Assembly (NCBI GenBank): GCA_977016875.1
Contig: CDRNST010000048.1
Coordinates: 868,001 to 932,000 of the forward strand
DNA length: 64,000 nucleotides
Source: Pavona decussata
Lineage: Eukaryota
Reading direction: 5' to 3'
The first letter of the stretch is position 1. The number at the start of each line of letters is the position of its first letter. The notes under the pieces are model-generated. The model was not told the DNA's origin, made no database searches, and saw nothing but the letters and a program-made list of their open reading frames with translations. The position numbers and the translations under genes are program-made. Shown here one piece after another: positions 3,554 to 63,458 of this stretch.

Positions 3554-5072
3554 ATGACGTCGAAACGCTGCCTGAATATACCGCTGACCATCATGCTGTG
3601 TGTACTGCTCTTACTGCTGATCACCTTGTGTTCTGCGAATGACAACAGCAGCAGCAGCAAACCACGTGACAACAAGGTGAGTTTGATGAACAGACTCTAG
3701 GTACAAACTCACAACAGTAAGCTCCCTTCCTGCTGCCCACCAAACAAAAAAGGATTCCAAAAGAAAAGAGTTACTGGTTACACGTCACTTCAAATTGCAT
3801 TTAACAATTTTAATCAGCTACTTGAAATTGTTGCAGTGAACATTATTTAAAATACAATTAAAAAGTTAAAAAATAAAACTCATTCAAAACGCTATTAACA
3901 AACCAATCAAAATATGTACATAACAATGTCCACAACTCAGCGCAAGTAGACTAAAAGAGAAGTTTTCATTTCTCCATTCAGGGTACTCCTCAACAGACGT
4001 CATCATATGGGTCTTGTGGTCACAGCACATGTTTCTGCGCACCAGGTATTCCAGGTATCCCAGGAAGCCCTGGATCCACGGGACCAGCAGGTGCCGCAGG
4101 ATCACCGGGCAATCACGGACCTGAAGGACCCATGGGCCCTCGAGGAAACAAGGGCGATGAAGGCCATAGGGGAAGACGTGGTACTTCAGGCCTTAAAGGT
4201 GCTCAAGGACCCCATGGACCTCCGGGTCCTGCTGGAAAAAAAGGCAAATCAGGTGCTCGTGGTAACCAAGGTCCTCCTGGCCCCAAGGGACAACAAGGAT
4301 CCTCTGGCCAACCAGGTTCACGTGGAAACAAGGGTGATACAGGTGCTCGTGGAATTCAAGGTCCCCCAGGCCCCAAAGGAGCTCTAGGGTCTGTTGTGCG
4401 TAACTGGAAACAGTGCGTTTTTAAGAAGCTGGGGGATGGAAGGGACTCTGGATTGATTAAGGTAACTGAGTTTTGAACTTGACATTAAATCGAAAGCTAA
4501 AAGCAACGAAATTATGTTTCTATGAATACTAACAATACCAACATCCGGTCTGACCTAGTTCAAGGTATAAGCTACTCCGGCCGCCCTATGACGTTGTATT
4601 GCACGGATGTATTTATACGTTTTAGACTGCATGATAATAATGTCTTTATATAAAAGCTGATGGTTTTCATTTCAGACCTGTTGTTGATTGATTTTTTTTC
4701 TCGTTTTTGCAGGAATGTGTTTTCAAGAAGATATCTGCCAAAACAGGGCTGCGTGTCTTCTGGAGTGGAACTCTTCGCATCTATGGCTGCCATGCGTGCT
4801 GCAGGCGATGGTATTTCACCTTCAATGGTGCAGAGTGCTCAGCTCCAGCAGCCATTGATGGCGTAGTGTATATGATACATGGGAATAGCGGCAGAAAGGA
4901 TTTACACCGTGTGAGGCAAATTGAAGGAGTCTGTGAGAAAGTCCACAAAGGCACTGTGCGCGTGGGATTCTGGGTCGGTAATTGTGCTGGTGTGGGATCG
5001 GCAGATGCATACACAGGCTGGAACTCAGTGTCCCGGATCTACGTGGAAGAAGTACCACCCCCACAGGCTTAA
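3554..5072 (+). CDS. CTHRC1: CTHRC1-like secreted short collagen, copy 1 (320 aa); coding exons 3554-3676, 3982-4461, 4713-5072
   Basis: Exon 1 encodes a hydrophobic signal peptide (MTSKRCLNIPLTIMLCVLLLLLITLCSA-NDN). Exon 2 has CGHSTCFC, 39 uninterrupted Gly-X-Y triplets and NWKQC. Exon 3 has CCRRWYFTFNGAECSAPAAIDG...EGVC...DAYTGWNSVSRIYVEE, the CTHRC1 C-terminal signature. Both introns are GT-AG, phase 0, and the joined frame is open. Confidence 0.95.
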
Positions 5073-5781
5073 AAAGAGCAAATTTTCATTTTTTCTTTTT
5101 TTTTAATTTTAAGGTGCTTGGTAGATTCCGAATGCGAACTGAATGATCGCTCAATTCAAAAAGGGTTAGAACCTCAATTTTAGCTAATGATAACCAACTG
5201 GAAGTAAATTTTGACAATCAAAACAGGCGTTTAATTTTTGAAGCTTCAAAGGTGTAAGGAGTAAAGGCAATTTTGTCCGGTAGCAATATATCACGGGAAA
5301 TACGCCAATAAAAGTCAAGTAACAATAAATAATACACTGTGTTGTGTGAATTTCTTACGGTGCTTGTTTCTTTGCTACAGAGTTGGATTTTACAAATTTT
5401 TACTAATTTTTTCTCAAACATGCCCTGAAGAAGAAAGGCCCTGCATTTCGAAATATTGGAAAAATATACTTTCTTGACCATGAAATCAGCCTTGCTCTTT
5501 TTTTTTTTTAAATTATTTGTTCTACAATGTTTTGCTGATTAGATCCTTTACTTCAGGATCTGGTACTTTTATTTTGTCGCGCTGGTCCTTGCAAACACAG
5601 TTAATTACTGGTTTTTACTCAACTTTTTCTTGGATTTTCATAATTCAACGATGGTCATCATGTGATATTTAAAGTGTATATGGCTGTTTTTTTTTTTGCT
5701 TGATAAAATGTGAATGTTGTTCTCGTATGAAAAAAAAAAAAAAAAAAAAAACCCTTGTCAATTTTTCTTCCCCGTCAAAAG

Positions 5782-6048
5782 TCACTTCCGGCTGGGTATA
5801 ATACCGCGTAGGACAGGAGACTGAGGATAGTAGGGTTGTGACGTCAATACAGCAGTTTCTCTAGTCCACAGTTGTTTCATTCTGAGTATTCGACAATCCA
5901 ATACATATTTTCGTCCACAACACAGTTTTCTTCCTCTACATACGAAAAGCAATTGAGGAATAGAGAAATCGTGGGACCTTTATTGACGTCACAGCCCTAC
6001 TATCCCTAGTCTCCCGTCTTACACGGTATTGTACCCAACCGGAAGTGA
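5782..6048. mobile_element. MITE-like element with ~70-bp terminal inverted repeats (degenerate copy ~49232-49468; right-arm remnant ~26200-26228)
   Basis: TCACTTCCGG...GTGACGTCAATA is matched by TATTGACGTCAC...CCGGAAGTGA. Confidence 0.65.
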
Positions 6049-6688
6049 AGTTTCACAATTTTATACGCCTTAAACGCAGCGGCAAAAAAATGAGGATTTA
6101 TTTACATGAAGATTTGATCAGGCAAAAAAAAAATTGTCATATACACTTTAACCTCCCCACACAATTAATCCACAAAAGGAAACGGCGTAGCGTGGATATC
6201 TACTTTGACGTAGTTAATCCACAAAAGTAAAATCTTGGCTACTTGGCTTTTTTAAAACTGTCGTGAATTTTTTTCACTGCACTTTTACTGCACCAGAACC
6301 ACTGTTTAATTTTTCAATCGGATTTTACGGGAAGTAAAACCAACATACCTTTTTCAGTTTTACACTGTTTCTTATCTTATTTATAAATAATAATAGGCAC
6401 GCTAGACTATATCTGAGCTCATATTCGATGATCTCGTTTGGACGATTACGTTCAAAAGTTTCCAGGACCCTTTATTCTCTTCCGCACCACCTCCCTCGCG
6501 AGGACAAGACAGTGGCGTTACAGAAACACCTCAACCCTGACTCACTGGGGCCCAATTTGACTCTGGTTCCCAGCTAGACCGCTTACTCGACTATGATTCG
6601 CCTCTAGGTACCTTGTACAATTTACAGAACTCTTCCCTTCTTATATGAGCGGCGATTGTATAAATGGATCTGCCTGAGGTTTATTTAA

Positions 6689-6994
6689 AGGGACTATGTC
6701 AGCTGGGACACATGCCCAGTAGAGTCCTGTTGAGACTAATTTGCATCCAACTCGTCAAGGGATTTTTCTTTTCCGCTATTGCAAAATCTTTCGAAAATAT
6801 CGCAGCAAACAGCTTCTGTAATTACTAAAGAACGTTTGCAAATGACTTCTTCAGCTAACTTTCCGAAGATGAACGCAAATCAAGCAGATGAAAACAGTTT
6901 CCTGAACTCTCCGACGGTATTTGGAAAAGTTGGGCCAACGATTTCAAAGTGCTTCTCATCGACGCGCGCATGCGCCTTGGGTGACATAGCCCCT
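6689..6994. mobile_element. Non-autonomous TTAA-target DNA transposon (Kolobok-like termini)
   Basis: TTAA|AGGGACTATGTCA...TGACATAGCCCCT|TTAA. The empty site is visible in unit 2 near 27798. Confidence 0.8.
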
Positions 6995-7179
6995 TTAAAG
7001 TCATGTCTCACCTCTGACCAAGAGAAATATACATTCTGTATACATGTATCACAATATGACCGCGAAAGACTGGACCTCAACTTCAGGCAGCATTACTTCC
7101 AGTTTATCTTCCTCTTGCTCATGTTGTCTTTCTCGACTTGATGTCTAAAGGCAGTAAACAAAATTTTTAGCTACTTACC

Positions 7180-8640
7180 ATTTTTTTTGTATTTTAATAG
7201 TTTTTATTCCATTTTATTTAGTTACAGATTCACAAATGAAATCAATACTAGTGCAGAACACACACACATCTACAAAGGACAGTAATTAGGGAGCCACGAC
7301 GCGTTATTATTATGGCCATCATTACTACTATTTTGTTACTTTTTATGAGCACCAAATATCAATCGTGGTGTTTGCTGATGTACTTGTCCCATTTATTTAA
7401 ATGAATAGCTAAGTTATCTGGTTATTTATCTAGTGATTTAGCGATTTTAGTTTCGAGCAGATAAACTACTTTAACTTTTGCAATAAATACTCTGAAGCTA
7501 GGTCTGGTTTCGACAATTCTACAATTACATATGTGCCGTTTTACTATTAACAAAATATGATTCACAAATAAAAAATCTTTACAGTCTAAAATACCAAGCA
7601 TTGTGTTTTTATTTGACAACTGATTTATATTTATATTAAAATCGCTAAACCACTTGATAACTTCCGTCCAGAACTCCCTAGTATAGTGGCAAGATACAAA
7701 GAGATGTTCAAGGGATTCATCTGTTTCTCCACAAAATGAGCATGCTGGTGAAAAAATACCGATTTTACATAGAAAGGCATTCGTAACTATACATCTGTTT
7801 AAAAGCTTGTATTGAAACTTGCGCGATTTTTAGGTTACACAAAATGGAAGACTGTAAATCTTTTACCAGTTTAAATTATCGTTTTCAAATTGAGCAACAT
7901 ATTTTCTCAGACTGGTTGGTTGGATGATAACTCTGTTTCGAAGTTCTTTGTAGATGATTTTTGACTCGGCTTTACTCAGGAGGACCTTTGTGCCATTTAG
8001 AAACAACTGACTCTGGTCATGTTAGATAAAAGGAACAGTGCCAGTACACTAGCAGGTCTTTAAGGATTGACGCCATGCTACTGGAGGGCATCCATCACTG
8101 AAGCAATTTGAAATGCATCCAATAGGGATACGTTTAGCTCTCTTAACTTACACTTCGTAATGAGCTCGTTGTTTTCAGCAATTAAATCCCCTATTCTAAT
8201 TATACCTTTGTTTACTAGTCTGTTGTTGTACACTGTCTTGCCATTGATGCAGACAAATTTATTGCTCCATAAAATAATACAAGCAACATCAGCAGTCTCG
8301 AGTTTGTCGGATTTTGTATGGTTTGCCACAGAACATTCTGTGAAATGTTTAAAGCATTCTTCATAAAAAGTTGGAAGCTTAATGGGCAGCAGCTTTACAT
8401 AAAAGTTACAACTTAAAACAAATTTACCACCGACCGGCTTTAGGTAATGTAGAACAATAGTTTTTCAGCTGCTGCGATAATCACTCGCTAATTTTTTTAC
8501 AGCAGAGTATTCTCTGAGCCTTAATTATGGAATATAGATGTGGAGCTTTAAGTCCACCATCTTCAATATTACCAATAAGCGCCAAACGTTTCATTATCTT
8601 TACCTTTCCAAATGAACTCAAATATTATTTTGTTAACATT
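7180..8640 (-). mobile_element. Degenerate 3' fragment of an L1/Tx1-type LINE ORF2
   Basis: Minus-strand peptides ILWSNKFVCINGK...GIIRIGDL, FQYKLLNR, CSFCGETDESLEHLFVSC (zinc-knuckle) and NHILLIVKRHI, interrupted by stops and frameshifts. Absent from units 2 and 3. Confidence 0.8.
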
Positions 8641-9559
8641 ATTTACAAATTTTTGGTCTATTCAAATCAGACTGGCACGAAAAAAAAAAAAATTGGGATG
8701 ATGAATGTTTTAACAATTTTAATTTTTACCAATTATAGTGAGATCCCTCCACCTTTCCTCTAATGGATTTGATCAACTCGTCAAAATTAAGCTCTCAGTT
8801 AAGGCGGTAATCGTAAGAGACATGTACCCCTAAGAGCTTCACAGATTTCTTGATCTTTATGGCCTTAAAGAAGTGTGCACTGCCCGCTCCGGAGTTCAAA
8901 TGGATACTGCGGATGTGTTTTTGAATTTTCATTTAATCAGAAATTCGAATCCGTTAAAAGGAAGATCACATTAAAATTAGTCAGTTTACCAAGTTTGAGG
9001 TTCTGTCGTTAGATTGCAACCATGTAGAAGGCTTTCAAAAAACTGAAAAATTAGAGATTTTATATGGATTTGGGGGACGCCTTTTCACAATTAGAGAAAT
9101 TTGTAGGAATTTTGGCGACCTTTGACAGCCTGGTTACTACGCAATGGAATATAACCAAACTTGGTAAACTTTGTGATTTTTATGTGATCTTTCTAGATCT
9201 GGCAATAGGGTTCATTTCTTCATATCGCTCAATTTGAACGATTTGTAAACTAGGGCCCATGCCTTTATGAGCTTCGGAACGGGCAATTGGTTGTACTCGC
9301 ATCGCAACCCCTAAAGACTGGATAACGGTACAATGCCATCTGTAACAGTGACTACTTTAGAGAACTTATATATCCAGGACGGCAATCCAAGGAAAATATA
9401 TACGTTCTTCAAAACCTCTGGAATCAAGCCATTTTACAATGAAGTTGTGTCGATAGCGACAAAGAAATGCACCAAACTGTATAACGCAGGCGCAGAACCA
9501 TTGTTTAGCGCAGTAATGTTTTTGGTGACGACCTCGTTGCCATTCTTTCCATGGGTTTG

Positions 9560-9966
9560 AGGAGGATGCCTCATTTTGCTAGTGCGCATACGTTCTGCGC
9601 ATCTCCAGATGGTTCGAGAACCTCTAATCTCTGAAGGACGGTGCCTACTAATTTAAAAGTTTGCGATTGCGCGATTCATGATTATACGGGAAAGGAACTG
9701 ATGTTAGCAAGGTCTATTGAAATAAAAAAAGAAGACTGGTGGTAACCACGCCTTTTTTTTTAGAGATAATCAAGTTTAAATATGGAAGAAATTTCACTCA
9801 TTGTTATGTTAACTTTTTTAACTAAGGCTTTTTAGAGTTATTGCTGCTTTAGTATCTCTGAAAAATGCGTGGTTACCCCAAATTTTCTTTTTAGATTCCA
9901 ATACCCCTTTGTAAGATCTCCATTTTCCACATTGTCATTCTCTGTATTAGGAAACACCGTCCTTAA
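9560..9966. mobile_element. GGACGGTGCC...GGCACCGTCC-family MITE immediately 3' of the LZTR1 stop (paralogues ~32385-32790, ~57570-57981; related remnants ~10433-10740, ~33268-33570)
   Basis: AAGGACGGTGCCTACTAA ... CACCGTCC|TTAA termini. Confidence 0.7.
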
Positions 9967-11826
9967 GGCCTCTTTTATCACGGGTTAACAGCTAGATCCG
10001 TGTCTTTTAAGTAGTCTGCTATAGCATCCAGAATCTCCAGCAACAAATCTCGGCTTAGTCTTCTGAGCTTCGGAGACTTTGCAACCTTCAGTGAGAGAGG
10101 AAAAGAGAAATAGTCAGTTGAATCATGCAGTGTAACATGCAGCTGGTATCTTCTGTTATTTCTCGTGGGAAAAACAAACTATCATGAGTTTTTTTCTTTG
10201 GGCAATTTCTCCACAATAAGCTAAAATACTGAATAAACTTGGAAACATTGCCCCATTTTTTTCAAGTTGCAGTCCATTTTAAACCTGACTATCCGCAGTC
10301 AAAGGTAATAAATACTAGTTTCTGTGCACTAGTAGGGTAAGTAACAAATATGAATCATTATTTTAACGTTTCCATCGATACAAATTTTTTTGCTTATTCA
10401 AAGTGACACTAAAAATAGGTGATACTTCTCCTTTAAGGACAGTACCTCCTAATGCAAAGTCATTTTTGCGCAGTTTATAGAAGGTAAAGGAAGAGGGAAG
10501 AGCTGATCCTCACAAGAACTATTGGAATACAAGAGAAAATGGGAGGGTAGCTACGCTTTTTCAGAGATAATTTTAGAACAACAATAACTCTAAAAATCTT
10601 AAAAATACATAACAATGTAGAGCATTTTCCCAAATTGAAGCTGAATTCTCTTTGAAAAATGCGTGATTACCGTCAATTTTCGTTTTGGATTCGAACAGTC
10701 CTTGCTGAGATCTGCTTTTCCTCCATTTTTCCCCTGAAAGTTTGATTTAAGATGTTCACGGTTTCTGGACTCGCACAGTGAAGCGCAGCAAACGGGAAGC
10801 CCAAGGGAATACCTTATTGGTCTTGTTAGCAAATGAAAGTAGCTCTGTCAAACACAAATTTAAATGAAATTTTAGTCAGTGGTAGTAACTTTCCACTTTC
10901 TACCAAAGTGCCTGAGAACTAGTTACCTTAGTAAAATGTCCGACAACAAGGTCGAGTGCATGCTTCTTCATGTCCGAAGCGCCGATCCTATGAGCCGCTT
11001 CAAGAATCTAATGAAAAATAATAAGAATCGTATAATAAGTTGTTTGTTATCAAGTAGTGAGATCTTGTTTCACCGATTAAAACACCAGATCCCAGTTGTA
11101 CTCGGCTATGCGTGGGAGACGAAGAACAGTTTGAAACAAACTAAATACCCGATGTAAGCGGCAGACTATAAGTTCTGAGTCTTAGTTAGAGAAACCTGAC
11201 ACTTCATTTTTTGAGAAGATATTTGTGGAAAACTGAATGCCTTGTCCTACAACCGTTTCAGAGACAGCGCGCCTTGCCATCCATATATCTTACCCCTTGG
11301 CCTGAGAGGAGAACTAGTGGAGAATGAGGCACCCTGGTATCGTGAAAGCCGCATCCCCCCCCCCCCCCCCCCCTTCCCCAATGGGTATCACACGATCGTC
11401 ATATGTGAGCAAAGTGATTTGGCTTGTAACTCAGAGCTCGCATGAACCAATCCAGCGAAACCTACGTTATGGAGTTTCACGGTAGCCCAATGGATGGGAC
11501 CAAAATTCTCAGTCCGTGACCGTCAAGTCCAAAAATGTTTTTTCAGCCCTCAGCGTTCTTTACAGGGACTCTCTGTATTCGCTAAAATAAACAGTTGTGA
11601 TAGTAATAGCGCCCTTTCCTTACCTCGACTACATTTTCAAACGAGACATTCATTTCCAGATTCTGTTTACAGAAGGCCTGAAAACGTTATCGAGTAATTT
11701 CATTAAATAACATCAAGAAGAAAACAGCTGTTAGAAAAGACTAAATTGTAAACCCTGTAAGGGATTATACAGACCTGTAGTCGATTGTTAGTGAAGCCAA
11801 AGAAATAAGGAGCTGACAGAAGATAT

Positions 11827-13112
11827 CTTGCATACAAGGTCAAGGAAAATTTCTTAATTTGATACCTTAAGACTATAATTAAGAAATTAGTTACGAAATT
11901 AGTGAGCGCGAGTTCAATGGAGCAGGCTTGTTATTACGAAACAATGAGTTCAGTTTTTCTGGACTTAGGGTGGAAGTTTTGAAATTACAATCTCGCATAC
12001 AAGATAAACTTCGATCTCCTTCATACTATATCATCATTTCAGCATATGATCAAAGGTAAAATTTACAGTGGAAGACTTATGTAAATTTTACCTTTTGCAC
12101 GACTTCACGTAATCATAAATATTCACGGCACGTGAACGGCAGTGGAATACACTGGATAAACAAAATAAAACTCATGTTCGAAGAAAGCAAATAATGACTG
12201 AAACTTGACCAAGATTCAGCCTTCTTATTTAACACCGGTTTCAGTTCTTAAGCCTAAAACTTGCTTGAATATCGAAAAGAATTGTTACTCTAACCGCTTG
12301 TAATTTGACAGAAAAATCTGTCAGGGTATTTTAAAGATATCTCGATTGATGCAAAGTAGGAACTTTTTCATTCATCCGCGCTTTATTTTAACTGTTTTTA
12401 AACATAAATATCTTAAAATCGGAGACACCCATGAAGCTTAATATACATTTAGAATGGTTTGCTATGAAGAATGACCTTTTAATAGTAAAGACAAGGTGTC
12501 AAGTTTTATTTTGCCGTAGATATTGGTGAAAAATGCGGGAATAAACAAAATCACCCCAGAAAAAAAATCGATTCATTATTTACTTGAAAACGCTCTTACA
12601 GATTTTTTCTAATTTCGCCTACAAGTTGTCTAGATTGAATAGTTTAAATCCCTAAAGTTTCGTCATAAAGTGTCTGACTAGATTTCGAGATAATCGACAA
12701 TGTTTAAAAAGAGAGGCTATGCGCTTCCGTTGCTATGGTAATGGCTGTTGCTTGGAAACCGATGAGAAAACTTTGATCATATGTTGAAATGATGATGTAG
12801 TATGAAGGAGATCGAAGTTTATCTTGTGTGCGAGATTGTAATTTCATAATTTCCACCGTAAGTCCAGAAAAACTGCCGCGAGCCTCCTTAAGGTTATGCA
12901 ATTGACGTTAATCCGAGACTTTAAATCTAACAGAGTTAATTGAAAAAGTTGTGCACTGGAAGTGCAGATGAACCCCTCTTCAAGGATATCTTCGCAAAAC
13001 GAAACAACATACGTTGAATACCTTAAAAAAGTTGTTCCGTGCAAATACCTTTTTTATCTAACAACATTTCTTCAATCAAGTGCATTTAAGAAACGTAACT
13101 CACGAAGGATAC
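11827..13112 (-). other. U12-type GT-AG intron in LZTR1 copy A (also 34659-35962 in B and 59249-59835 in C)
   Basis: The 5' site is CT|GTATCCTT. A branch site TTTCCTTGAC (11848-11839) lies just upstream of the AAG acceptor with no polypyrimidine tract. The join restores ...EDSL-YLL in frame. Confidence 0.92.
11951..12887. mobile_element. Non-autonomous Kolobok-like element with ~120-bp TIRs inside the U12 intron (left tip deleted)
   Basis: The arms at ~11951-12055 and ~12771-12887 are inverted copies. The right end is CCTCC|TTAA. Confidence 0.85.
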
Positions 13113-14595
13113 AGTGAGTCCTCAGGTGGCATAGACACATCTCCATGATAAATATAAAGAAGGAGAGAGTTGAAAGCTTCTCGCGAAGGAATTGTCTCAC
13201 CAATGGTAATCTTTATGAGGAAAAAAGACGGTTAACGGTTTACGCGTGTGCTCAACAAAACAAACACAAATGAAACAATAACAAAACATAAATCAGAACT
13301 CAATGAGAAAACAATGGAACTTATTATGATGAAGGCGATGTCTGCATCAAGTGTCGCAAAGAGTAAGTTGGTGTATAATTCTCCCTCCCCTTCTCCCACT
13401 CCCCACCCCTTACGTTTGCTGGTGCCTATTTAACACCTGGGCTCAGTTGTTCGATAGTCGGTAAGCATTAAACCGAGAGAAAACAGTTAGGGAAGTGGTC
13501 AAATAAAACTACTATTTTCAAGTGGGGCCCACCAAACCACAAAATAGATCAGGTGGTCTCTGCCTGCACCCCTTCTTCCTCAACCTGTAAGAAGGACAAT
13601 GAGATTCACACATCACTTTTCTTGTTTGTCTAGCAATGCTGTCTCTTTCTAGCTTAATATTTCTGTGCAAACGCAAATTTTAAAGCCATTAAAACTTTGT
13701 CGGTAATGTTCATCAGGTAGGTGGGGTCTTCCATAACCCCTCTATCCCAGACAAGGTGAGTCATCTTAGCCTGTTTCAAGCGTTCAGACGGTTGGCGAGC
13801 AGCGACAATTGGCGAGGGAACGATTAAAGTAATTCTACCTACCGTGACTGTGTTGTTCTCTGGCATAAATGATCGAAACATTGCCTCAAAATAACTAAAC
13901 AGAAAGAAAAAGAGCAAGGTTCAAAAACTAAATGTGTATGGTATGTAATCCTACTCAAAACTTTCAGGGTGACGAGACAATACACACCAGAACATGACAA
14001 GATTAAAAGGAATTTTGTCGAAAACAAAACTATACTTTAGTAATCACTATAATAGGCACAGTTTAGTTTTCGTCTCATATGTTTCTTGTATTCATGGTAA
14101 TAAGAACATGTAATAAAGAAGTTATTCCCTCAGCCAACCTACCTACACCTTGCAGCCAAGACCGCCTAGAAGGAAAAAATGGTAGATAGTCATTCACCTC
14201 ATAAATCTTTTACAAGAGGCAAACATAGGCACGCATCGCGCACAGAACTGATGGCGTTTTCTGAAAAGTGGTCTATTGTTGAAGAGTCCGTCAAAGCTCA
14301 AAGATGATAAAATGTTCGTGAGTTTGTGAGTTAACTAACTCATTTCACGATTTACTAAAACACGTTTCAAGTCTTTTATGTGGAGACAAGTCGGCAATAG
14401 GTGTCTTTGTTTTCTCTTTGAATGCGTGATATTACCTTTTGGTTCCTAAAACATTTTTTTTAGCAAATCATAAAATGATTCAGTAAACTGACAACCGACT
14501 CACAAGAAAAACTTACAGGCTTTTAAAGCTCTCAAAGTAAAAATCTTATATTAACGGACTTTTATGATTTTGTCTTTTCGTTTGACCGCGGTTAA

Positions 14596-14747
14596 NNNNN
14601 NNNNNNNNNNNNNNNNNNNNNNNNNNNNNNNNNNNNNNNNNNNNNNNNNNNNNNNNNNNNNNNNNNNNNNNNNNNNNNNNNNNNNNNNNNNNNNNNNNNN
14701 NNNNNNNNNNNNNNNNNNNNNNNNNNNNNNNNNNNNNNNNNNNNNNN
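14596..14747. other. Assembly gap (others at 37456-37602 and 53505-53702)
   Basis: Runs of N. Confidence 1.
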
Positions 14748-15646
14748 ATGATGCCTATTATTTGATGTAAATGTCAGCTGACCACCCAGTATAATCTGTG
14801 AGTACAATTCATGCAAATAAACAAAACAACACGCTCGGTCAGTCAAATGTCTATTAAGAAGAAATTTTCTCCGGTCACGCAGAGAAGTGAATCAAAATCC
14901 TATGAGTTTCAGTTGGCTGAACATGGTTAAAAGTGATCACGACGTTTGTGTTTTAAGTATTACACACTGTTGAACTGAAATTTGGCAGGGTTATTGTAAT
15001 GGAATAGTTACTTTAAACAAACATTTTCGACACACACACACAAAAATAAAGGTTCTGGGATAGTGATACTCGTTTTGCCTTGCCAACGAACCACCAACGA
15101 GTGCCGTTAACTGACAAAACATACATCTGCTACATTATTTTTTATTTATATCTTCTTTGTGGAGACGCCATTGTTAAAGCGTGCTTTGACAAAAAGACAG
15201 AGCTGTTCCATTACAGTCATTACATTTCCAAAATGAAGGTGTGTCTTCGGACGTATTTCTTTGTAACTTAGGGTGGACGCCAAAAATTTCGGCAACCTGT
15301 TTAACCGGATGAGCAAATACTCACGTACTTTATGTGCCCCGATTGCTTCGCCGTCCACCATCAGCGTGATGTCATGAAAGTCTTGGCCGCGCGCTCCCTG
15401 AAGAAAGTCCAACATGTCTTGTTGTAAGGTTTTCTCTGCAAAATATAAGAAGAAACTGCAAGGTGAGCGAGAACATGGTAAAATGTCTGCAGTTTGAAAA
15501 ATAGCGTTCTCTAGCGTACTTGGATGCGTCGACCGACACTGGTTGTCTCCTGGAATGAGGGCACTTGCCTAAAAAAGGAAACGAAAACTGATTTTAATTA
15601 AAATATAATATTACCTCTTTCATTCCTGATACAAACTTCAGTTAAT

Positions 15647-16003
15647 AGGGACCTTATGAAAACACGACGGCGACGGCAACGGCAACGTGAAAAAACAAAA
15701 GATTTAATGAGCTAAACAATGGCTCCGCACGTGTGTTAAAAAGTTAGTACATCATCGGCCACACAACGCCGTGAAATAACCAAATACAAAGTTTAAAGGA
15801 GAACGTAAACACCAGACGGTAACTGTTTCGTTGTTTTTTTCCTTACTTGAACACCGTTGTAACTAACCATGCTCCTGGTTATTGAGTTTACACTGTACAA
15901 GTTGAACGGGTTGGAATAATCACAAAGTAGATCAGATAACGCGAGTATTTATTTCTAAGTGACATTTCGGTTGACTCTGCCGTCGTGCTTTCGTAAGATG
16001 CCT
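15647..16003. mobile_element. MITE, PIF/Harbinger-like with a 3-bp AAT TSD (paralogue ~38502-38858)
   Basis: AAT|AGGGACCTTATGAAAACACGACGGC...GCCGTCGTGCTTTCGTAAGATGCCT|AAT. Confidence 0.75.
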
Positions 16004-16009
16004 AATGTA

Positions 16010-19700: not shown

Positions 19701-20339
19701 ATTGAAGCGGAAGACTTGACATGTTTTCTTTGTATTTCCATACGATTTGAGGGCTTTCAGGAATATTTGGGGAAACAGAGTTTAATTTGCATGGATGCTT
19801 TAGGCTGAATATTTAATTTCAAAATCAATCCTACATGGCGTTTGTCTTTCTTTTGGTTTCGTTGGCGCACTAGAAACGTCATTTTGATCCGGTTAAAATA
19901 GAGGACCGCAATTTTCTCATCAGTTGGAAAATTCCAGGCCAAGTTTCTCACCGCAATTCCAATCGAAATATCTGAAGCGATATTACAACGAAACGAATCA
20001 TTTTAGGGTGCCCTGGTTCAGATTTTGGATTTTTTGCCTGTTATTATACTGTGTATAACAACTTCTTTAATTTCTTTCTTATTAGATTTACGTTTCCGTT
20101 CCGCCGAGCAATGCAGTCGAGAAAATAATGCAAAGGTCACTGAAAGGTAAATTAGTTTAAACATGTATTCACTAAGACGTATTAAGGTGTTAAAATTAAT
20201 TACAGCATAAGGCTAAGTTTCAGCTTAATTCTTTATGGACTATTTTACTTGCATAAAATAAAATCGGTGTTAGTATAAATCTCATTATCTTGTAGGTCAG
20301 TTTTGGCTTTAGGTGAAGCTTTTACGTTAGACCTTCCGT

Positions 20340-42024: not shown

Positions 42025-42061
<37 letters not shown>

Positions 42062-51097: not shown

Positions 51098-52446
51098 TTA
51101 AGGTCAAGTCTTACCTTTTACCAAGGGAAATAAACACAATCTGTATACAAGTACCGCAAAGTGACCGCAAAAGACTGGACCTCAACTTCAGGCAACCTAT
51201 AACTTCCAGTTTATCTTCCTCTTCTTCATGTTGTCTTTCCCGATTTGATGTCTAAAGGCATTTAAGAAAATGGTGTTTCAGTACTATTTATCAATTGCTT
51301 TGTTTTAGATAAATGGAAAATTTCCTTGCTTTTGACAATGATGAATCGTGATGGTCACAAAATTTGGTTGGAAAGCTGTTTAAGGGGTACTTGTGAGGTC
51401 TTTGTGTAAGAATGGATCCACTGATTTGAGGGAAGTGGAGACCGTTTATTGCGTAGACTGTTACAGCTGATTCACAATACAGGTTTCATACTTTGAAAAA
51501 AAAAGTTTCGTCACGGGAAAAGTGAAGAATACACTTAAGACTAATTTACACAAACCGATTAATCGGACCGATTTGACAAAGAAAATGAGTAAGCGGACGA
51601 AAATCGACCGGTTTATAAAAATCAGTGGCAGAGCTACAGATTTTTGGAATCAGGCCGATTATCACCCCACACTTCACCAACAGAGAAAGAAATCAGCCGA
51701 CAAATTGCAATCTGTAAATTGACCCATGCGACTTGAAGGGGAAGTATCACGCAAATTTACTGTCATTTCAAAAAACCCAAAAATGTTTGTCTGTCAGCAG
51801 TAACGATGAAATAATGTTCAGGTTTGTTATAAATTATCTCCCCAGTGCAATAAAACTGTCGATTAGTGCCTCTGGCCAGAGACAGAGTAGGCCAGTATGG
51901 ATTGAAACTTGAAAAATGTTAGGCTAACGTTTTTCAAGTTCTCGCATTTTTGTTTCGAAAATGCGCTAGAATTGATCACGACTTTTTTCCTTTCAGGAAT
52001 TGAGTTGATTTCGTTCCTCTCGTCATTCTAGAGTTATTTGGCAGCTGATTGAAGGTCTTATTTTCATCATTTTTAACAAAAAATACCAAAAACCCCATGA
52101 TACTTCCCCTTTTAGCCTACTAATCAGGCTGATAAATCGGTAAGTGTAAATTAGCCTTTATACTACTTAGTACAAAGAAAGGATTTTTGGTATCTTACAT
52201 GCATGACTGTGAGCTAAAGACCAGAAAACATATCAATAGAAGTAGAATTGTCGCACCTGTAGTCTTTCTCTCGTTCGGAGCAGCTGTGTTCTTAACCGAA
52301 GGCGACCTGGCCGCCACAAAAGCCGCATGACCCGGGAACCGAGTCCATTCCTGAAAAGAGAATAAGTGAAGTTGTTGTAACAGCCATTGCATAAGCTCTG
52401 TCGTTGGAAAGTTTTTGAAAGCTAATTTTAAGCTAATAGTACTTAA

Positions 52447-52827: not shown

Positions 52828-53732
52828 TTAAGGAAAAGTCTTCGTCAAACCTGTGAGACAAAATATTTTGTAAGAATCTTTATATAATGGTAATTAAATT
52901 TGAATCAAAGTTCACGTTAAGCCACCCTAGGTAAAAAGAGACAACGCGGAGGCGGATCAAAGTTTCTTGTCCAAGAAAACAACACGACCGCAGCACGCTA
53001 ATCACTACACCATCGCTCTTCTACCTGATATCGAAAGTCGTGCCTCTATTTTAGTTTTTACAATAACTTTCAAAATTCCCGCTCGCTGAGTGGCTCAAAG
53101 CTATTGTCAATAAGAGTACAAACAATAATCAAAGGCTCCTGTGAGCCAACTCGTGTTTGCAGAAGTAAATAGTGGCAAGCTATAAAACATTGTTTGCATT
53201 GTGCTTGGTTGGTGGCCCAGGATCAGACATATATAAGCCATAAAGGGTTAATTAAGGGCCTCACTGGCATTTTATTCCGCGTCCTACGCCACTTTAAGTA
53301 GATTATTAGCCGTTGTCCTCGGTAAGATTTGTATTTTTTAAGAAACATTTAATTTTGAAAATTGTATGGAACGTTTGGAATAGTTGGCTTTTTAAAAGCC
53401 GAAAAAAAAAAAGAAAGAAAAAAGTGTCTCCTTTACCTCAGGAATCGAACCCGAGACCCTTTGCATCTAAGTCAGCGAGCTACCCCACTGGACAACATTG
53501 TCCANNNNNNNNNNNNNNNNNNNNNNNNNNNNNNNNNNNNNNNNNNNNNNNNNNNNNNNNNNNNNNNNNNNNNNNNNNNNNNNNNNNNNNNNNNNNNNNN
53601 NNNNNNNNNNNNNNNNNNNNNNNNNNNNNNNNNNNNNNNNNNNNNNNNNNNNNNNNNNNNNNNNNNNNNNNNNNNNNNNNNNNNNNNNNNNNNNNNNNNN
53701 NNGATTAATCAATCAACCAATCAGTCAGTCAG

Positions 53733-53779
<47 letters not shown>

Positions 53780-54670
53780 GCCAGTCAATCAATCTTTATT
53801 TATACACGTTTAGAAGTAAAAGCTTAACAGCTGTGGGTAACAAACAAGTTGAGTTCAACTAAATTATAATATGCACATGAATACGATAAAATACGTACAC
53901 GACTTTGCAAACTAAAAATTGCCGTGGTAGCACGCCTTTTAACGAAAAACTAGCAAAAAGCGCAAACATACTTTCCAAAGTCGCAACTTATTTGAAATTG
54001 TAATCGAGTATTATCTCGTATTTTCTTTTTGAATCTCTTCACAGCATATTTATTTTACAAAACAAAAGTAACTGTTATTCATTTCGTATGTAATAGTTTA
54101 TTGTTCCGCGTACCAGAACGTTTAAAGGTGGCTGAGCTTTATTTTTTAAAGTTTTGATTTTCAACAACAACAACAACAATAACAACTACAGCTAAAATGA
54201 CATAAAATAGAAAATGAAATAGAAAAGGGTATTGGCTTCCTTAAATAACTTGTGAGTTAAAGAACAAGGAAGGCAATTTACGTGAAATAAATTACAATAT
54301 TGAGGCCGGAAAACACAGAGAAAAGAGACAACAAACACAACAGAGACAAAAACACGCACAACAGTATCTACCTAACAAAATAAATAAATCAAGCTTAAAG
54401 CAACAAATAAATCATGGAAAATCATGAAATAAAAATGAAATTGACAAGATCAGAATAAGAACCAGCATTAATATTTGCTTAGAAGTTCTCGTTTCAGATT
54501 TTCTTTAAATTTTCTGCAGAAGGTTGACTTCACATTTTTACCTAAAGAATTCCACAATTTTGGTCCCTGAAAACGAATGTTAAATATTCCATAGTTTGTT
54601 CTTGCTCCAGGCAGATAATATAATTGATTTGCTGCACTTCTTGTTTTATAGGTATGAATATCAGCTATTG

Positions 54671-55826: not shown

Positions 55827-57166
55827 TTTTTCACGTTGTTTTATTATTTATTTGCACTGTTTATAACATACACTGTATTTACTTCTTACACGATGCTTAC
55901 TCTACATTAACGTACACTACTTACAATACATATATTACAATACAATTTCACTAGTCAAATTATATTACATATGATCTGTTTACAATGACATTATTGTTCG
56001 TTTGTTAATTATTCGAGTCACTTATAAGAATTTTATTTGTTACTATATAGGGTGTTGATTTTCTAGAATTTAATAGAATATTAAATAAATAGGTAGCGAA
56101 AGCAAACAAATCAAAATACAAAACCTTAAAAGAAAAAAAAAAGACAGTACAATTTTATAAAGACAGAAAAAAATTTCCATTTGTTTCTGAATTCTTTCTC
56201 CTTATTAGAAGTGACAGCAATATGTTTTTCCAGATTGATGTTTTCGCGCACAAGTGAGAGAAAATCATCGAATTGAGAAGTTATAGTATTTAAAGCGTTA
56301 ATATATAAGAAATATTTACCCAAAATAATGAGATGGTTGAGAGCTAAACAGTAGGTGTGACAGCGAGTAATTCCGAACATAACCTCTAGTTCTGACAGCA
56401 GCAGTTTCGTATTACTAGAGATTGAGTACCACTCCTGGAATTTATTCCAAAAAGAACTTGCGTGTGTGCAGTTTTTAAACAGATGCCACAGGGTTTGACA
56501 CTCAGAAGGACAAAAGGGACAGGAGGGTGAGGCGACTTTTTTCATTTTGTGTAACAAGCTATTCGTTGGTAATATGCGGTGAATGATTTTGTATTGGAAC
56601 ATCGTCAATTTAATTTCTCTCGAAGTTGGTGGAGGTAGATCTTCAAGGTTAAGCAGCATACTGTATATTGTCTTGCATGTCAGTGAACAAATCAAGGTGG
56701 GAGGCGTAACTGGATCCATGGAACCTTCTTGCAATAGTTTCTTCCAATTTTGGGGAATAGAAGAAATAATGCTATGATATTGTAAAAAGTTACATTTTAC
56801 GTTGAATTTATTGTAAAAGGAATTAAATGGAAGGAAATGGCCCTCACGGGAGTCCAAAAGGTCCGAGATTTGTTTTATTCCTGCTTGATGCCAATGAGGA
56901 AAGAATACCATTTTCTTATTCACAATTAAAAATCGGTTGTTCCAGATTGGTTGTAGGAGAACCTCATTTTTATTTTTAGGTGTGGCCTTTGTGATATCCT
57001 GCCAGTAAAAAATGATTTGCTTGTAGAAAGCAGGAAGATGGTTATCTAGGTTAAGTAGATCATACTCATAATTACATTTAAACAGTTCTGTGCCGCCAAC
57101 ATCGGCGAGGAGCGATTTTGGTATGTACTGCCGTGGGGCATCCGAGTTAGAACATAACCGTTTCAC
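55827..57166 (-). mobile_element. 5'-truncated L1/Tx1-type LINE with a 17-bp TSD
   Basis: ORF 56126-57166 (IWNNRF, FQYKIIHRIL, CPFC...HLFKNC zinc knuckle, NHLIILGKYFLY). CCAAACTGGGTAAACTT is duplicated at 55810-55826 and 57167-57183. Empty sites are present in units 1 and 2. Confidence 0.92.
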
Positions 57167-57992: not shown

Positions 57993-60900
57993 TCACGGGT
58001 TAACAGCTAGATCCGTGTCTTTTAAGTAGTCTGCTATAGCATCCAGAATCTCCAGCAACAAGTCTCGGCTTAGTCTTCTGAGCTTCGGAGATTTTGCAAC
58101 CTTCAGAGAGAGAAGAAAAGAGAAATAGTCATGTGATCCATGCAGTGTAATATGCAGCGGGTTTTTCTGAAAGTTTGGTTTAAGATGTCCACGTTTTCTG
58201 GACTCGCAGAGTAAGGTGCAGCAAACGGAAACCCCAAGGGAATACTTCATTGGTCTCGTTAGGCAATGAAAATCCCTCTGTCTTCCACATTTAAATGCAA
58301 TGTTAGTGAGAGTTATCAACTTTCCTCTTTCCACCAAAGTGCTGAGAAATAGTTACCTTGGTAAAATGTCCGACAACAAGGTCGAGTGCATGCTTCTTCA
58401 TGTCCGAGGCTCCGATCCTATGAGCCGCTTCAAGAATCTAATGAAAAATAATTAGAAACGTATAATAAGTTGTTTGTTATGAAGAAGTGAGGTCTTGTTT
58501 CACCGAATTGAAACACCAGATCCCAGTTGTACTCGGCTGAGCACGGACGACGAAGAACAACAGTTTGTAACAAACTAAATACCCGATGCAAGCATCAGAC
58601 TATCATTTCAGACTTGGTTAAAGAAATCTGATACTTCAGTTTTTGAGAAGATATTTGCAGAAAACGCCTCGATCGGTTCGCATAATCTTTTCAGGTCTCA
58701 CACAATCGATTCAGAGACAGGGCGTGTTGTCATCGGTATATCTTACCCCTTGGCCTGTGAAAAAAAACTACTTGGGAATAAGGCATCCTGGTTTCGTGAA
58801 ACCCGCATACCCCTCCGTATCAAACGATCGTGATTTGAGCAAGTGAATTGGCTCGTTACTCATAGCTCTCATGAACCAATCCAGCGAAACCTACTCTGTG
58901 GAGTTTCATGGTAGGCCAATGGATGGGACCAAAATTCTCAGCCCGTGACCGTCAAAATGTTTTTTTAGCTCCCATCGTTCTTTACAGGGACTCTATGTAT
59001 TCGTTACAATAAACCGTTGTGATAGTAATAGCGCTCTTTTCTTACCTCGATTACATTTTCAAACGAGACATTCATTTCCAGATTCTGTTTACAGAAGGCC
59101 TGAAAACGTTATGGAGTAAATTCATTGAACAACATCAAGAAGAAAACAGATGTTAGAAAAGACTAAATTGTAAAACCTGTAAGGGATTATACAGACCTGA
59201 AGTCGATTGTTCGTGAAGCCAAAGAAATAAGGAGCTGACAGAAGATATCTTGCATACAAGGTCAAGGAAAATTTCTTAATTTGGTAATTTAAGACTATAA
59301 CTAAGAAATTAGTTACGAAATTAATGAGCGCGAGTTCAATGGAGCAGGCTTGTTATTAAAAAAAAAAACGAGTTCATTTAAGGTCATGCAATTGACGTTA
59401 ACCAGAGACTTTAAATCCAACAGAGTTGATAGAAAAAGCTGTGTTCTGGAAGTGCAGATGAACCCTTCCTCAAGGATACTTTCTCATAACCAAACAATGT
59501 TCCCTGAATACCTCACAAGGGCGCATACACTCAATTGAAAAAAAGTTGTTCCGTGCAAGCGTGAACGATGCAACCTGATGGAATTATGGGATGCTCTTAT
59601 TAGTATGCGCACATTTCCTGTTTTTTTTTTTTTTGTCGCCCGTGACAAATATGTAATTTTTAAACCCGAGAAAACGCACGTGCTTTTATTTTCTAACAAC
59701 AAAAATGCAAATAACTTCATAGGTCAAACGTTCTCCAGAAAGCTGCTGAGTCTTATCATTTATGGTTTATACATTTTTATCTGACAACGTGTTTTCAATC
59801 GAGTGTATTTAAGAAACGTAACTTATGAAGGATACAGTGAGTCCTCAGGTGGCATGGACACATCTCCATGATAAATATAAAGAAGGAGAGAGTTGAAAGC
59901 TTCTCGCGAAGGAATTGTCTCACCAATGGTAATCTTTATGAGGAAAAAAGACGGTGAACGGTTTACTCGTGTGCTCAACAAAACAAACACAAATGAAGCA
60001 ATAACAAAACACCAATCGGAACTCGATAAGAAAACAATGGAACTTATCATCAATGATGAAAGTGATATCAAAATCAAGTGTCGCGAAAAGCAAATAGGAG
60101 TATAAGTACTCCCCCTCCCCCCCCCCCCCCCCCCTCCTCGTTCAGTCCAGCAAAGACACACCCTCAGCATTTTGTTAGCAGGCGTGACCCTTTATGTTCG
60201 CTGCTACGTATTTAACACTTGAGCCTAGATGTTCCACGCTGGGGATTTTTTTAAGTCAAATGTGGCCAAAACGTTTCTCCTCCTTAGGGTTTTGTAGTAG
60301 CAACCTCAAACTTTGCAACCAGACAAAACAATATTTTCTCTACAACTTGCCCTAATCGGATTTTTGAATTTCATTTTTCTAGCGGTAAAATGACGTCATC
60401 AATTTGGCGGGAAATTTTTTTTTTGAGCTACGACACAGTTGTCCCTAACATAAAAAAACAACATGAAATGAGAATAACAAATCTGAAAACAAATTTGGAA
60501 TACCTCATTGGAGTCAAGAGTTATGGGAAGTTAAGCGTTCAATTTAAGGCTTTTTTTAGTAACAAAATGGCGGAAAATTCAAACTTCAGAAGCCCAAAAT
60601 TTTTGATTCAGTTTAGATATTTCAAATCGTTTTTTCAGTTTTGTAATCCTTCAGGTATGTTTATTTTAAAAAAATGTGATCGCCTGCAAAAATTGAGATT
60701 CGTACAATAAAACCCTGAGGAGAAGAAACTTCTCGGCCGAATTTGACTAAAAAAATCCCCAGCGTGTTCGATAGTCGGTTAACGCATGGTCTATAGGAAA
60801 AATACAGTTCGACTAAATTAAGTTAAATTTCTCTCAAATAAAGTCAAATCAAAGTCACAAGACTACTCGGATGTAAGCAACAACTAGACAGAATATGTCG

Positions 60901-63458
60901 TATGAAAGCACGGGTTTGTCACGTTTTTGGAGCTTGACAACCTCAGCGTGAGAATGCGCCTTTTGAGGAAATGAAGAGCATGCAATTCTACCCACCATGA
61001 CCGTGTTGTTCTCCGGCATAAATGATCGAAACATTGCCTCAAAATAACTAAACAGAAAAAGAAAAAGAACAATCTTCAAAAACTAGATATGAATGGTATA
61101 TAATCCTACTGAAAACTTTCAGGGGGACGACCCAGTACACATCAGAACACGAGAATCTTTAAGGAATCTTCTTAAAAGACAATTAAAAAAAACGCATTAC
61201 AGTTTCAGTGTTGTATTTTTCTTGTATTTATGGTAACAAGCACATATAAGAAAGAAGTAATTCACTCAGCCAACCTACCTACACCTTGCAGCCAAGACAG
61301 CCTGGAGGGAAAAAACGACAGATAGTCATTCATTTCGTAAATCTTTTACCAGAGGCAAACATAGACACGCAACGCGTACAGAAGAGATGGCGTTTTCTGA
61401 AAAGTGGCGCCATGCATTGATCGCGGTCAAACGTAAAAACTAAGAAAAGTCCAATTTTCGCTCTGGTGGAAGGGAAAAACCCTAAATTCAATCACCTTAT
61501 CAGAACAAGAAATAATATACGGATTCACTAGAGATCTCTCTCGTCGTCTTGGCTTAAACCTCTGTTTAATTATTGCCAAATACTACATCTATTCTGCGTC
61601 ACGAAGAGAAGAAGAGTTTATCTGGGAAGCCTAGTATTGTGCTATATTAAAGAGTCACCTTGAAATTGAAAATCACAAATCTAAATTGCAAATAAGTCTT
61701 TGAGTCTTTTAATTTTAGTTCATTTTTTGCTACATTGCTTTGCAAGGCTGCCATGTGCCAGCAAGTAATGTGTAATTGTGTAATTTTTTGCTTAAGTTTG
61801 TAGTTTTAAAAGCATCATAAGTATTGTAAACATCTTTAGTACCGTCAGTTGTAAGTATGTAAGTATTGTAAGTAATTAGTATCGAATTGCAAGTAACGAT
61901 ATAATTGTTAGTACCGGTGTTAGCTGTATTGTAAGTTGTGTAGCTAGTTTGTTGTGTAGTTAAGTATGCTTCTTTTTTGTTTTGTAATGTAGTATCATAT
62001 AGTAATATAATAAATGAAATGTACTGTTCTGAAGTATTCAATAAAGTTTTCTTAAAAAAAAAAAAAACTAAGAAAAGTCTGGTGAAGATAAGGTTTTTAC
62101 TTTGAGAGCTCAAAGATGATCAGCTTTGCGTGAATTGTGAGTTTACCAACTTTTTGCACGATTTATTTAAAAAGTTAATTTCAAGTCTGTTATGTGGAGA
62201 CTGGTAGGCGCTGTGTGTCTTTGTTTTCTCTTTGATTGCATGATATTACCTTATCATGATCTAGCAAGAGAAAATTCTCTTGGTTCTAGCAAATCATAAA
62301 ATAATTTAGTAACCTCAGAGACTCACAAAAAACTTACCAGCTTTCAAAGCTCTCAAAGTAAAAACCTTATATTAACTGACTTTTCCTACTTTTTACGTTT
62401 GACCGCGGTTGCGGTCACGTGACTAGTATCGTATAGTATCGCAATCGGCATTTGAGCAGACCTAAGAAACGATCAATGCCTATTATTTGGTGACAAGTTA
62501 GCTGACCTTCCAAAAGTCCGTGGGTGCAATTCATGCAAAAAAACAAAACGTCCCCGTTCCTCAGATACATGCAAAAGAAATTTCCTGAGGTCATCGCCCG
62601 TCCTCGTTTGAGGAAGATATGTCCAGAAATGCACGCTAATGAAATTCAGAAACTGTATGATAGACATCACAAGGTGTCCCCTAACCTTAATTCTCACCAA
62701 AACACACATAATTCTGTCAAACATGAAGTCATGTGAAAACGACAAAAAGACTTGTTTTGTATGAAGTACCCAAATTCAGGGTTAGGTGCATTTCTGGACA
62801 TAAGTGACACTGTTGAACCGAAATTTGGCAGGTTTTGAAACTTTAAAGTTGAGTACTGTTGGGAACAATTGTAAAGGTCAAGTGGATGTAAAGTGTTGTG
62901 ATTACTGCAAAGACCAAACAAAGGTTATTGTAATGGAATAGCTACATTAAACAAACATCTTCAATACAAAAGGTTCTGGGGTGGTGATATTGGTTTTGAC
63001 TTGCCAACGAACCACCAACGACTCTCTTCTATGACTTTTTATTTATATGTTCTTTTGTCGGGGCGCCATTGTCACAGCGTGTCTTGACAAAAAGATAGAG
63101 CTCTTCCATTACATTTTCAAAATGAAGGTGCGTCTTCAGACTTATTTCTCTGTAACTTAGGGTGGAAGCTAGAATTTTCCGGTAACCTGTTTGACCGTAT
63201 GAGCAAATACTCACGTACTTTATCTGCCCCAATTGCTTCGCCGTCCACCATCAGCATGATGTCATGAAAGTCTTGGCCGCGCGCTGCCTGAAGAAAGTCT
63301 AACATGTCTTGTTGTAAGGTTTTCTGTGCAAAATAAGTAAACCAGCAGCAAGGTGAGCGAAAACATGGCAAAATATCTGCAATTTGAAAAACGGCGTTCT
63401 CTTGCGTACGTGGATGCGTCGACCGACACTGGTTATCTCCTGGAATGAGGGCACTCGC
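57993..63458 (-). CDS. LZTR1: LZTR1 copy C, last 9 exons; the 5' part would lie beyond the right edge (parental gene or another decaying duplicate)
   Basis: Exons 63458-63410, 63325-63219, 61301-61279, 61047-60996, 59933-59836, 59248-59197, 59099-59046, 58437-58357, 58100-57993. More diverged from A/B than they are from each other. Carries AHK>ADK and an acceptor CAG>CAC change at 63326. Confidence 0.75.
60235..60766. mobile_element. Non-autonomous CACTA/EnSpm-like element (532 bp, 3-bp TSD)
   Basis: TTC|CACGCTGGGGATTTTTTT...AAAAAAATCCCCAGCGTG|TTC. The empty site GTTGTTCGATAG is present in A/B (~13450, ~36300). Confidence 0.85.
61452..62062 (+). mobile_element. Short 5'-truncated L1/Tx1-type LINE end with poly(A) and TSD
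   Basis: Reads FSLWW...[10 protein letters not shown]...[13 protein letters not shown], then an AT-rich 3' UTR, AATAAA and poly(A). AAAAACTAAGAAAAGTC flanks both ends (61435-61451, 62063-62079). Confidence 0.85.

Follow-up and report, generated by a model that had tools for sequence, protein, structure and literature searches.

The 64,000-nt stretch of the Pavona decussata genome analyzed here (assembly GCA_977016875.1, contig CDRNST010000048.1, hereafter C48, positions 868001-932000; this whole stretch is referred to as the window) carries a tandem array built from a CTHRC1-like gene with a collagen stalk and part of LZTR1, the gene of a Kelch-BTB-BACK-BTB-BACK CUL3 adaptor for RAS-family GTPases. 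Self-BLAST of the window (G+C 37.7%, three N runs) revealed three direct head-to-tail units of ~22.9 kb each, offset by 22.7-23.4 kb (E = 0) and 77-91% identical across most of their length. Each unit contains a complete CTHRC1-like gene on the plus strand and, on the minus strand, a multi-exon 3' fragment of LZTR1, which we call a tail. The window is the left part of an array of ~312 kb (C48:~840-1151 kb) that comprises 10 LZTR1 tails and 13 CTHRC1 genes. A preliminary description of this DNA had claimed the three units, a complete CTHRC1 gene and a multi-exon LZTR1 fragment lacking the 5' half in each of them, and an array that may pass both window edges; all of these claims are borne out by the results below.

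The three CTHRC1-like genes of the window all consist of three exons with an open frame (3/3). In all copies, exon 1 encodes a Met followed by basic residues and a hydrophobic run, a putative signal peptide. Exon 2 encodes the stalk (Pfam Collagen, 1e-20), which has ~37 Gly-X-Y triplets and ten more in unit 2, where the added triplets correspond to a 90-bp internal duplication (24760-25115); the copy at C48:1040 kb is similarly extended. The head exon (4692-5069) matches Pfam CTHRC1_C (PF25815, E 7.3e-45, positions 23-137 of 137), and the heads of units 2 and 3 show 90-91% identity. The split between exons 2 and 3 falls at profile positions ~23-27, where the coding region of the head domain begins, which agrees with the intron position described for cnidarian Cthrc1 genes (Genome Biol Evol 2020, PMC7058181). 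These number 8-14 per species and form clusters of tandem paralogues, and the genes of the window share with them the variable Gly-X-Y stalk, the conserved head at the C-terminus, an intron where this head starts and the adjacency of close paralogues on one scaffold, seen also in Acropora; a signal peptide, putative in the window genes, belongs to the published ones too. Unlike the published clusters, for which LZTR1 is not mentioned, the family comprises at least 150 head exons genome-wide in this coral, and the repeat unit of the cluster described here has engulfed most of a host gene. A second CTHRC1 cluster on the same contig (C48:~480-716 kb) is inverted, has ~13-kb units and contains no LZTR1 pieces; the region upstream of its CTHRC1 genes is 70-80% identical to that of the LZTR1-linked array.

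The exons of the LZTR1 tails were defined from conservation between copies together with a minus-strand reading, and mapped with a coral LZTR1 protein (P0020), to which the window exons are 86-95% identical. In our labeling, the 12 exons run from Ea to Ek (Ed is split into Ed1 and Ed2), and two further exons upstream are named Ez and Ey. Values of dN/dS were summed exon by exon. The identity of the gene was established with a spliced contig from a related coral (L050, one of nine loci from a scan of coral metagenome contigs), whose 334-aa open reading frame (ORF) has its exon joins exactly as deduced for the tails; the joins also match the RNA-like contigs discussed below. This ORF contains BTB (2e-24, residues 161-250), BACK_BPM_SPOP (70-110) and BACK (271-319) matches in Pfam, and a large protein search returned homologues named leucine-zipper-like transcriptional regulator 1 with E-values down to 1e-121. 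Its identity to LZTR1 is 86% in Acropora digitifera, 60% in Saccoglossus and 53-54% in vertebrates (birds, fish), with a range of 53-60% across hemichordates, insects and vertebrates. Exon order in the window equals that of L050 and describes two tandem BTB-BACK modules: the tails keep the end of BTB1, BACK1, BTB2 and BACK2 in LZTR1 order, and Ey, Ez and Ea match BTB positions 17-39, 45-76 and the domain end, respectively. The Kelch half is absent, as residues 1-181 of P0020 are unmatched anywhere in the window. The window copies are therefore LZTR1 fragments and not complete members; the whole locus holds one complete gene.

Other searches were less informative. No single exon was long enough to name the gene: Pfam gave only a weak BACK match, a single-exon query against a representative library of 1.8 billion proteins returned only ORF fragments from coral contigs, three single exons searched against PDB sequences, which do not include the BTB-BACK part of LZTR1, gave nothing useful, and atlas look-ups returned BTB/BACK only. 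Genome scans with the Kelch profiles PF24681 and PF13418 and the BTB profile PF00651 were flooded by KLHL-type genes and gave no match on C48. When the upstream part of L045, an LZTR1 contig of a related coral, was searched at the DNA level, a dispersed repeat flooded the matches. L045 and L046 (both metagenome Ga0126343) are ~90% identical from Kelch to BTB2; they represent either two coral species or a duplication of the full gene in that coral.

In tail c2, every AG/GT splice site is intact, apart from the U12-type intron between Eg and Eh, which has signals of its own. This intron, located near the 3' end of the gene, occupies a position that is probably homologous to that of human LZTR1 intron 18. 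The human intron is also U12-type, with the branch site TCCTTAAC (PMC9459249). Inside the intron, c2 and c3 (and no other tail) carry a ~925-bp element with ~105-bp inverted ends that are 94% complementary (11951-12875 and 34786-35741). Exon Eg (13113-13210), bordered at its end by the U12 5' splice site, shows 99-100% DNA identity across most of the ten tails, with the flanking intron at ~85%; this identity exceeds what protein-level constraint alone predicts. The Ec-Ed1 intron contains a minisatellite with a 106-bp period (16019-16631 and 38874-39484), on which public contigs pile up 100-1000x deeper than on its flanks, indicating a dispersed repeat that is abundant genome-wide.

Comparison with related corals (L043, L045, L049) clarified how the two genes are arranged. 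In these corals, Ez is followed by an empty intron of 0.5-0.7 kb and then by Ea, and Ey, the first BTB1 exon and the Kelch exons lie upstream of Ez. In the genome studied here, CTHRC1 separates Ez from Ea in every unit; for example, the CTHRC1 gene of unit 2 sits between an open Ez copy and Ea of c2. On the minus strand, a unit thus reads Ey, Ez, an intron with an antisense CTHRC1 gene, Ea to Ek, and the stop codon. The presence of Ez and Ey relics beyond CTHRC1 means that CTHRC1 is nested in the Ez-Ea intron of LZTR1. The preliminary description had CTHRC1 converging on LZTR1, with a breakpoint inside LZTR1 upstream of 18256/41109. The convergent arrangement is real and the breakpoint is intragenic, but it is not just upstream of these positions: CTHRC1 is nested, LZTR1 resumes beyond it, and the unit breaks on its inner side in the interval that separates Ey from the first BTB1 exon, which is single-copy. 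The possibility that Kelch exons are hidden in the unit spacer was rejected, as the spacer has no conserved minus-strand coding blocks other than Ez and Ey. Small genes on the opposite strand of a host intron are known, such as OMG, EVI2A and EVI2B in NF1. The CTHRC1 genes resemble them in this respect, but here the nested gene has been co-amplified with flanking exons of its host into a higher-order tandem array.

Sequence upstream of the tails is common to all ten of them as far as ~20420 of the window. Within it, the LZTR1 intron gives way to CTHRC1-array sequence at a junction (~18930-18975) marked by a THAP-domain relic of a dispersed element that is also found on other contigs, and homology to the inverted, LZTR1-free CTHRC1 cluster (C48:485-716 kb) begins at ~18975. 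In one RNA-like run (X6), contig depth is seen at 18786-18979, upstream of Ea, beside the THAP relic and an E2F-like TTTCGCGC motif; this could be a transcription start serving either the internal tails or the THAP element.

Whole-genome searches with the exons of the related corals and with P0020 located the 5' half of LZTR1 directly to the right of the last CTHRC1 gene of the array (Table 1). The first BTB1 exon and the Kelch exons, whose best Pfam match is the ATRN/LZTR1 propeller, are single-copy, and hence only the last tail, c10 (C48:1126-1133.5 kb), is able to complete a full-length LZTR1. It is joinable to the 5' half by splicing over a ~17-kb Ez-Ea intron that contains the CTHRC1 gene at 1148 kb. 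None of the ten tails is directly contiguous with the 5' half; direct contiguity of the leftmost or rightmost tail was considered and rejected, since all tails have a common upstream junction. LZTR1 is normally single-copy. The locus resembles LZTR1 in its named homologues (53-86% identity), in the U12-type intron and in the propeller type of its Kelch exons, and it differs in that the rear two-thirds of the gene are present in ten copies, of which nine lack the Kelch substrate-binding half, and in that the presumably functional copy hosts a CTHRC1 gene.

At a larger scale, genome-wide searches found 9-12 copies each of the BTB2, BACK1, Ea, Eg and Ek exons, all on the minus strand of C48 between 840 and 1133 kb and interleaved with 13 plus-strand CTHRC1 head exons (872-1148 kb). 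Nine tails (c1-c9, of which c2, c3 and c4 are in the window) and eleven CTHRC1 genes were mapped by reading C48:828-1092 kb; C48:1092-1160 kb, with c10, the terminal Ez and Ey and the 5' half, was placed by match coordinates only. The array consists of three ~100-kb super-repeats: c1, c5 and c8 all have the same 12-nt insertion in Ec as well as a duplication of Ea, and the CTHRC1 genes at 872, 966 and 1065 kb, spaced by ~100 kb, are ~98% alike. Head-to-tail copies with common junctions and repeated larger blocks are both features of tandem segmental-duplication arrays. The array starts with a tail and ends with CTHRC1, Ez and Ey, followed by the 5' half, which fits a unit bounded by the 3' flank of LZTR1 (window 8867) and the intron preceding Ey. 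The CTHRC1 half of unit 1 (1-8002) is 98.3% identical to C48:962194 and C48:1060476. Unit 1 matches the super-repeat pattern to ~8 kb and then becomes unit-2-like, as expected from recent conversion between neighbors; in the block shared by units 1 and 2, introns differ by 1.1% (substitutions only), and this block is probably the product of recent conversion or duplication between neighboring units.

Table 1. Features of the array, in window coordinates unless marked C48
Feature	Position	Strand	Remarks
Repeat unit 1	~66-20500		Self-BLAST; approximate bounds
Repeat unit 2	20500-43400		Self-BLAST
Repeat unit 3	43400-64000+		Self-BLAST; clipped at window edge, runs on to ~C48:936.6 kb
Near-identical block	8867-20625 vs 31692-43505		~11.8 kb; 94.8-97.4% identity (self-BLAST)
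CTHRC1-like gene, unit 1	3554-5072	+	Signal-peptide exon from 3554 (putative), Gly-X-Y exon within 3955-4473, head exon 4692-5072
CTHRC1-like gene, unit 2	24182-25798	+	10 extra Gly-X-Y triplets
CTHRC1-like gene, unit 3	47002-48525	+	
LZTR1 tail c2 (unit 1)	9978-18256	-	12 exons Ea-Ek; end of BTB1, BACK1, BTB2, BACK2; stop 9978-9980
LZTR1 tail c3 (unit 2)	32805-41109	-	Intact; 8 exon differences vs c2
LZTR1 tail c4 (unit 3)	57996-63458	-	Ed1-Ek inside window; rest beyond window end
U12-type intron	11827-13112	-	Between Eg and Eh; 5' site GTATCCTT, branch site TTCCTTGAC ~12 nt from 3' site
Ez relic (BTB1 middle)	7013-7141	-	In-frame TGA; upstream of c1, across unit 1 CTHRC1
Ez copy upstream of c2	27817-27945	-	Open; 88% identical to coral LZTR1; BTB positions 45-76, E 0.0026
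Ez relic upstream of c3	51116-51248	-	Frameshifted
Ey relic (BTB1), unit 2	29244-29327	-	
Ey relic, unit 3	52300-52353	-	Degenerate
THAP-domain relic	18615-18746	-	Pfam THAP 1.5e-5; dispersed element
Ez, best copy	C48:1150259-1150396	-	No stop; 8 copies in genome
Ey, best copy	C48:1151390-1151515	-	4 copies in genome
First BTB1 exon	C48:1154062-1154181	-	1 copy in genome
Kelch exons	C48:1154598, 1156799, 1157538 (to ~1157.7 kb)	-	1 copy each in genome
Assembly gaps	14596-14747 (c2) and 37456-37602 (c3)		Homologous places in Ed2-Ee intron, units 1 and 2
Assembly gap	53505-53702		Spacer of unit 3, beside (TCAA)n microsatellite; flanks colinear with unit 2

The preliminary description also held that the LZTR1 tail had hitch-hiked with CTHRC1, which implies neutrality, and this is not what the substitution patterns indicate. 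Exons Ea-Ek diverge 3-5x less than the introns: compared with c2, 2.3-4.4% of exon sites differ in c1 and c4-c9, against 10-14.5% in introns. Pairwise dN/dS is 0.06-0.2 for most pairs and 0.3-0.5 for pairs involving c8. Codon changes private to one copy, which cannot stem from conversion among the sampled copies, include 37 synonymous and 35 non-synonymous changes where the neutral ratio is 1:3.46 (omega ~0.27, p = 8e-8). Ez and Ey provide an internal control, since they decay in the same units: five of eight Ez copies carry stops, and Ez in the units mostly has stops or frameshifts. This argues that the retained part of the gene is under selection. The tails are even more conserved than the presumed CTHRC1 payload, with a dN of 0.006-0.03 that is several times below that of the CTHRC1 heads in the same units (dN 0.04-0.12, median omega 0.28). 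Judged from these patterns, Ea-Ek is under purifying selection in most internal copies.

We consider it probable that the array arose when a nested CTHRC1 gene was amplified together with the rear two-thirds of LZTR1, its host, that one complete LZTR1 persists at the right end, and that the headless tails have been selected. A unit from an older, LZTR1-free CTHRC1 array would have entered the normally ~0.6-kb Ez-Ea intron, with one junction at a THAP-type element. The segment bounded by a point ~1.1 kb beyond the LZTR1 stop codon and by the intron preceding Ey would then have been duplicated repeatedly, by unequal crossing-over or segmental duplication of the ~23-kb unit. Later, ~100-kb blocks of about four units would have been triplicated, and neighboring units would have exchanged sequence. 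The main selected payload is probably the CTHRC1 genes, which are intact and evolve faster. At least some internal tails are probably used, or were until recently, at the protein level, a function deduced from their constraint. Their likeliest product would be a Kelch-less BACK-BTB-BACK protein initiated at a Met inside Ea; for c2, the predicted Kelch-less product has 297 aa.

Several points weigh against this interpretation. The order of events, with insertion first and amplification later, is suggested by shared junctions and is not dated, and the terminal gene (C48:1092-1160 kb) is known from match coordinates only. Furthermore, six of the nine internal tails are lesioned. Tail c4 has a +4 nt frameshift in Eb (outside the window) and an AG>AC change in the Ed2 acceptor; c6 has two frameshifts (+1 nt in Eb, -1 nt in Ec); c7 lacks the Ea acceptor and half of Ec; c8 lacks Ej and Ek and has a poor Eh acceptor; c9 lacks Ea; and Ei of c1 is cut. 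Tails c2 and c3 are intact, and c5 is without a disabling lesion. Because of these lesions, the selection signal on the internal tails may be historical. RNA-like contigs of 2118 and 1615 nt, from two runs guessed to be RNA, join Eb, Ec, Ed1 (a 49-nt piece) and Ed2. In the 2118-nt contig, Eb begins at nucleotide 1114, which leaves at least 1054 nt upstream of Ea, as a full-length, Kelch-bearing mRNA would give. The contigs are not assignable to a single copy: at two Eb positions, their bases agree with c10 and most other tails and differ from c2 and c3, and Ed2 is closer to c2/c3. Copy-specific variants by which transcripts could be assigned to c2 or c3 lie at 17268 and 17300. Among the contigs surveyed from the RNA-like runs, no read has a transcript start inside an internal unit.

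These observations are the strength of the nearest alternative, in which the array has the same structure but the internal tails are dead pseudogenes, their apparent constraint reflecting conversion by c10 or a very recent loss of function. Exchange between units is clear (the 11.8-kb block at 1.1%, and mosaic identity elsewhere), and no transcript is assigned to an internal copy. However, conversion would homogenize introns and exons alike, yet conservation peaks sharply on exons of 23-123 bp. The copy-private substitutions are depleted in non-synonymous changes, and Ez and Ey in the same units are unprotected. We regard the pseudogene explanation as possible but clearly less likely than selection on the headless tails.

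An arrangement of CTHRC1 and LZTR1 as plain convergent neighbors, with a breakpoint just upstream of Ea (18256) and the tails as neutral passengers, is improbable. The convergent orientation and the Kelch-less fragments on which it draws are real, several tails are broken, and elsewhere, in the absence of LZTR1, CTHRC1 has undergone massive expansion (at least 150 head exons), which makes it the amplification-prone partner. However, the model predicts a single set of Ez and Ey exons at the end of the array, and relics occur beyond CTHRC1 in each unit; it also predicts the opposite of the observed array ends, and no constraint on the exons.

An assembly artefact, in which allelic haplotypes or a collapsed repeat were laid out as tandem copies, is very improbable. 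It can point to the LZTR1 halves of units 1 and 2, which differ by 1.1% substitutions, within the coral allelic range, and have gaps at corresponding places, separated by one repeat period. The other units differ by 10-20%, with different indels, lesions, transposon insertions and collagen-repeat numbers, which excludes allelic concatenation, a scenario raised in the preliminary description, for the array as a whole and restricts it to these two halves. Even there, a unique CTHRC1 gene separates the near-identical halves, so that the array has to accommodate both of them, the flanks of unit 1 keep to the ~100-kb super-repeat pattern, as expected of real conversion, and public contigs of the same organism hold both unit-1-like and paralogue-like sequence. 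Equally remote is the idea that the internal tails are alternative 3' cassettes of the sole LZTR1 promoter, with the terminal Ez donor spliced to different Ea acceptors: it would explain constraint on Ea-Ek alongside decay of the internal Ey and Ez without internal promoters, and the Ea acceptor is kept in every checked tail except c7, but it needs introns of 40-310 kb across polyadenylation sites and antisense CTHRC1 genes, has no junction evidence, and would yield little diversity, as the tails differ little in protein (dN 0.6-3%).

Under the favored reading of a co-amplified nested gene with selected headless tails, the locus shows how a rapidly growing family of secreted proteins can settle in an intron of a conserved regulator normally present once, and pull the larger part of that regulator's gene into a ~300-kb array while the gene itself survives. 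The array also provides nine natural LZTR1 truncations that have no propeller and keep the modules for CUL3 binding and dimerization. A further, tentative proposal, which we hold to be rather unlikely, is that the tails form an expressed family of Kelch-less BACK-BTB-BACK proteins, or alternative 3' cassettes, that pair with LZTR1 or CUL3 and tune the turnover of RAS GTPases. If this were true, CTHRC1-driven amplification would have created natural regulators of the dominant-negative type for a conserved tumor-suppressor pathway in a coral, and expressed tails would make a testable example of 3' gene fragments giving rise to new regulators. Human partial segmental duplicates, such as SRGAP2C, NOTCH2NL and ARHGAP11B, encode truncated modulators of their parent genes. 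They share with the tails an intragenic breakpoint and truncated copies that keep an open frame and dimerization-type domains. Unlike these 5' fragments with a parental promoter, the tails are 3' fragments without a known promoter, and their expression is unproven. Tandem growth of CTHRC1, truncated segmental duplicates and nested genes are all known; their combination with constrained headless tails is new. For annotation, the array implies that gene callers will fuse or miss copies, and that the true LZTR1 spans a CTHRC1 gene.

The remaining features of the window concern assembly gaps and spacers. The gaps in the Ed2-Ee introns lie outside coding sequence, in the two near-identical tails, and exon order and strand across both of them agree with the seven tails that have no gap. 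Near the third gap (53420-53800), the left flank resembles the 3' part of a tRNA, possibly from a SINE, and the right flank is a long (TCAA)n tract. ORFs with zf-RVT matches at 7425-7829 (minus strand, E 1.4e-9) and 56126-57166 (minus strand, E 1.8e-6) are retrotransposon remnants in the spacers, and the spacer at 5070-8867 contains several dispersed repeats that are present on many contigs.

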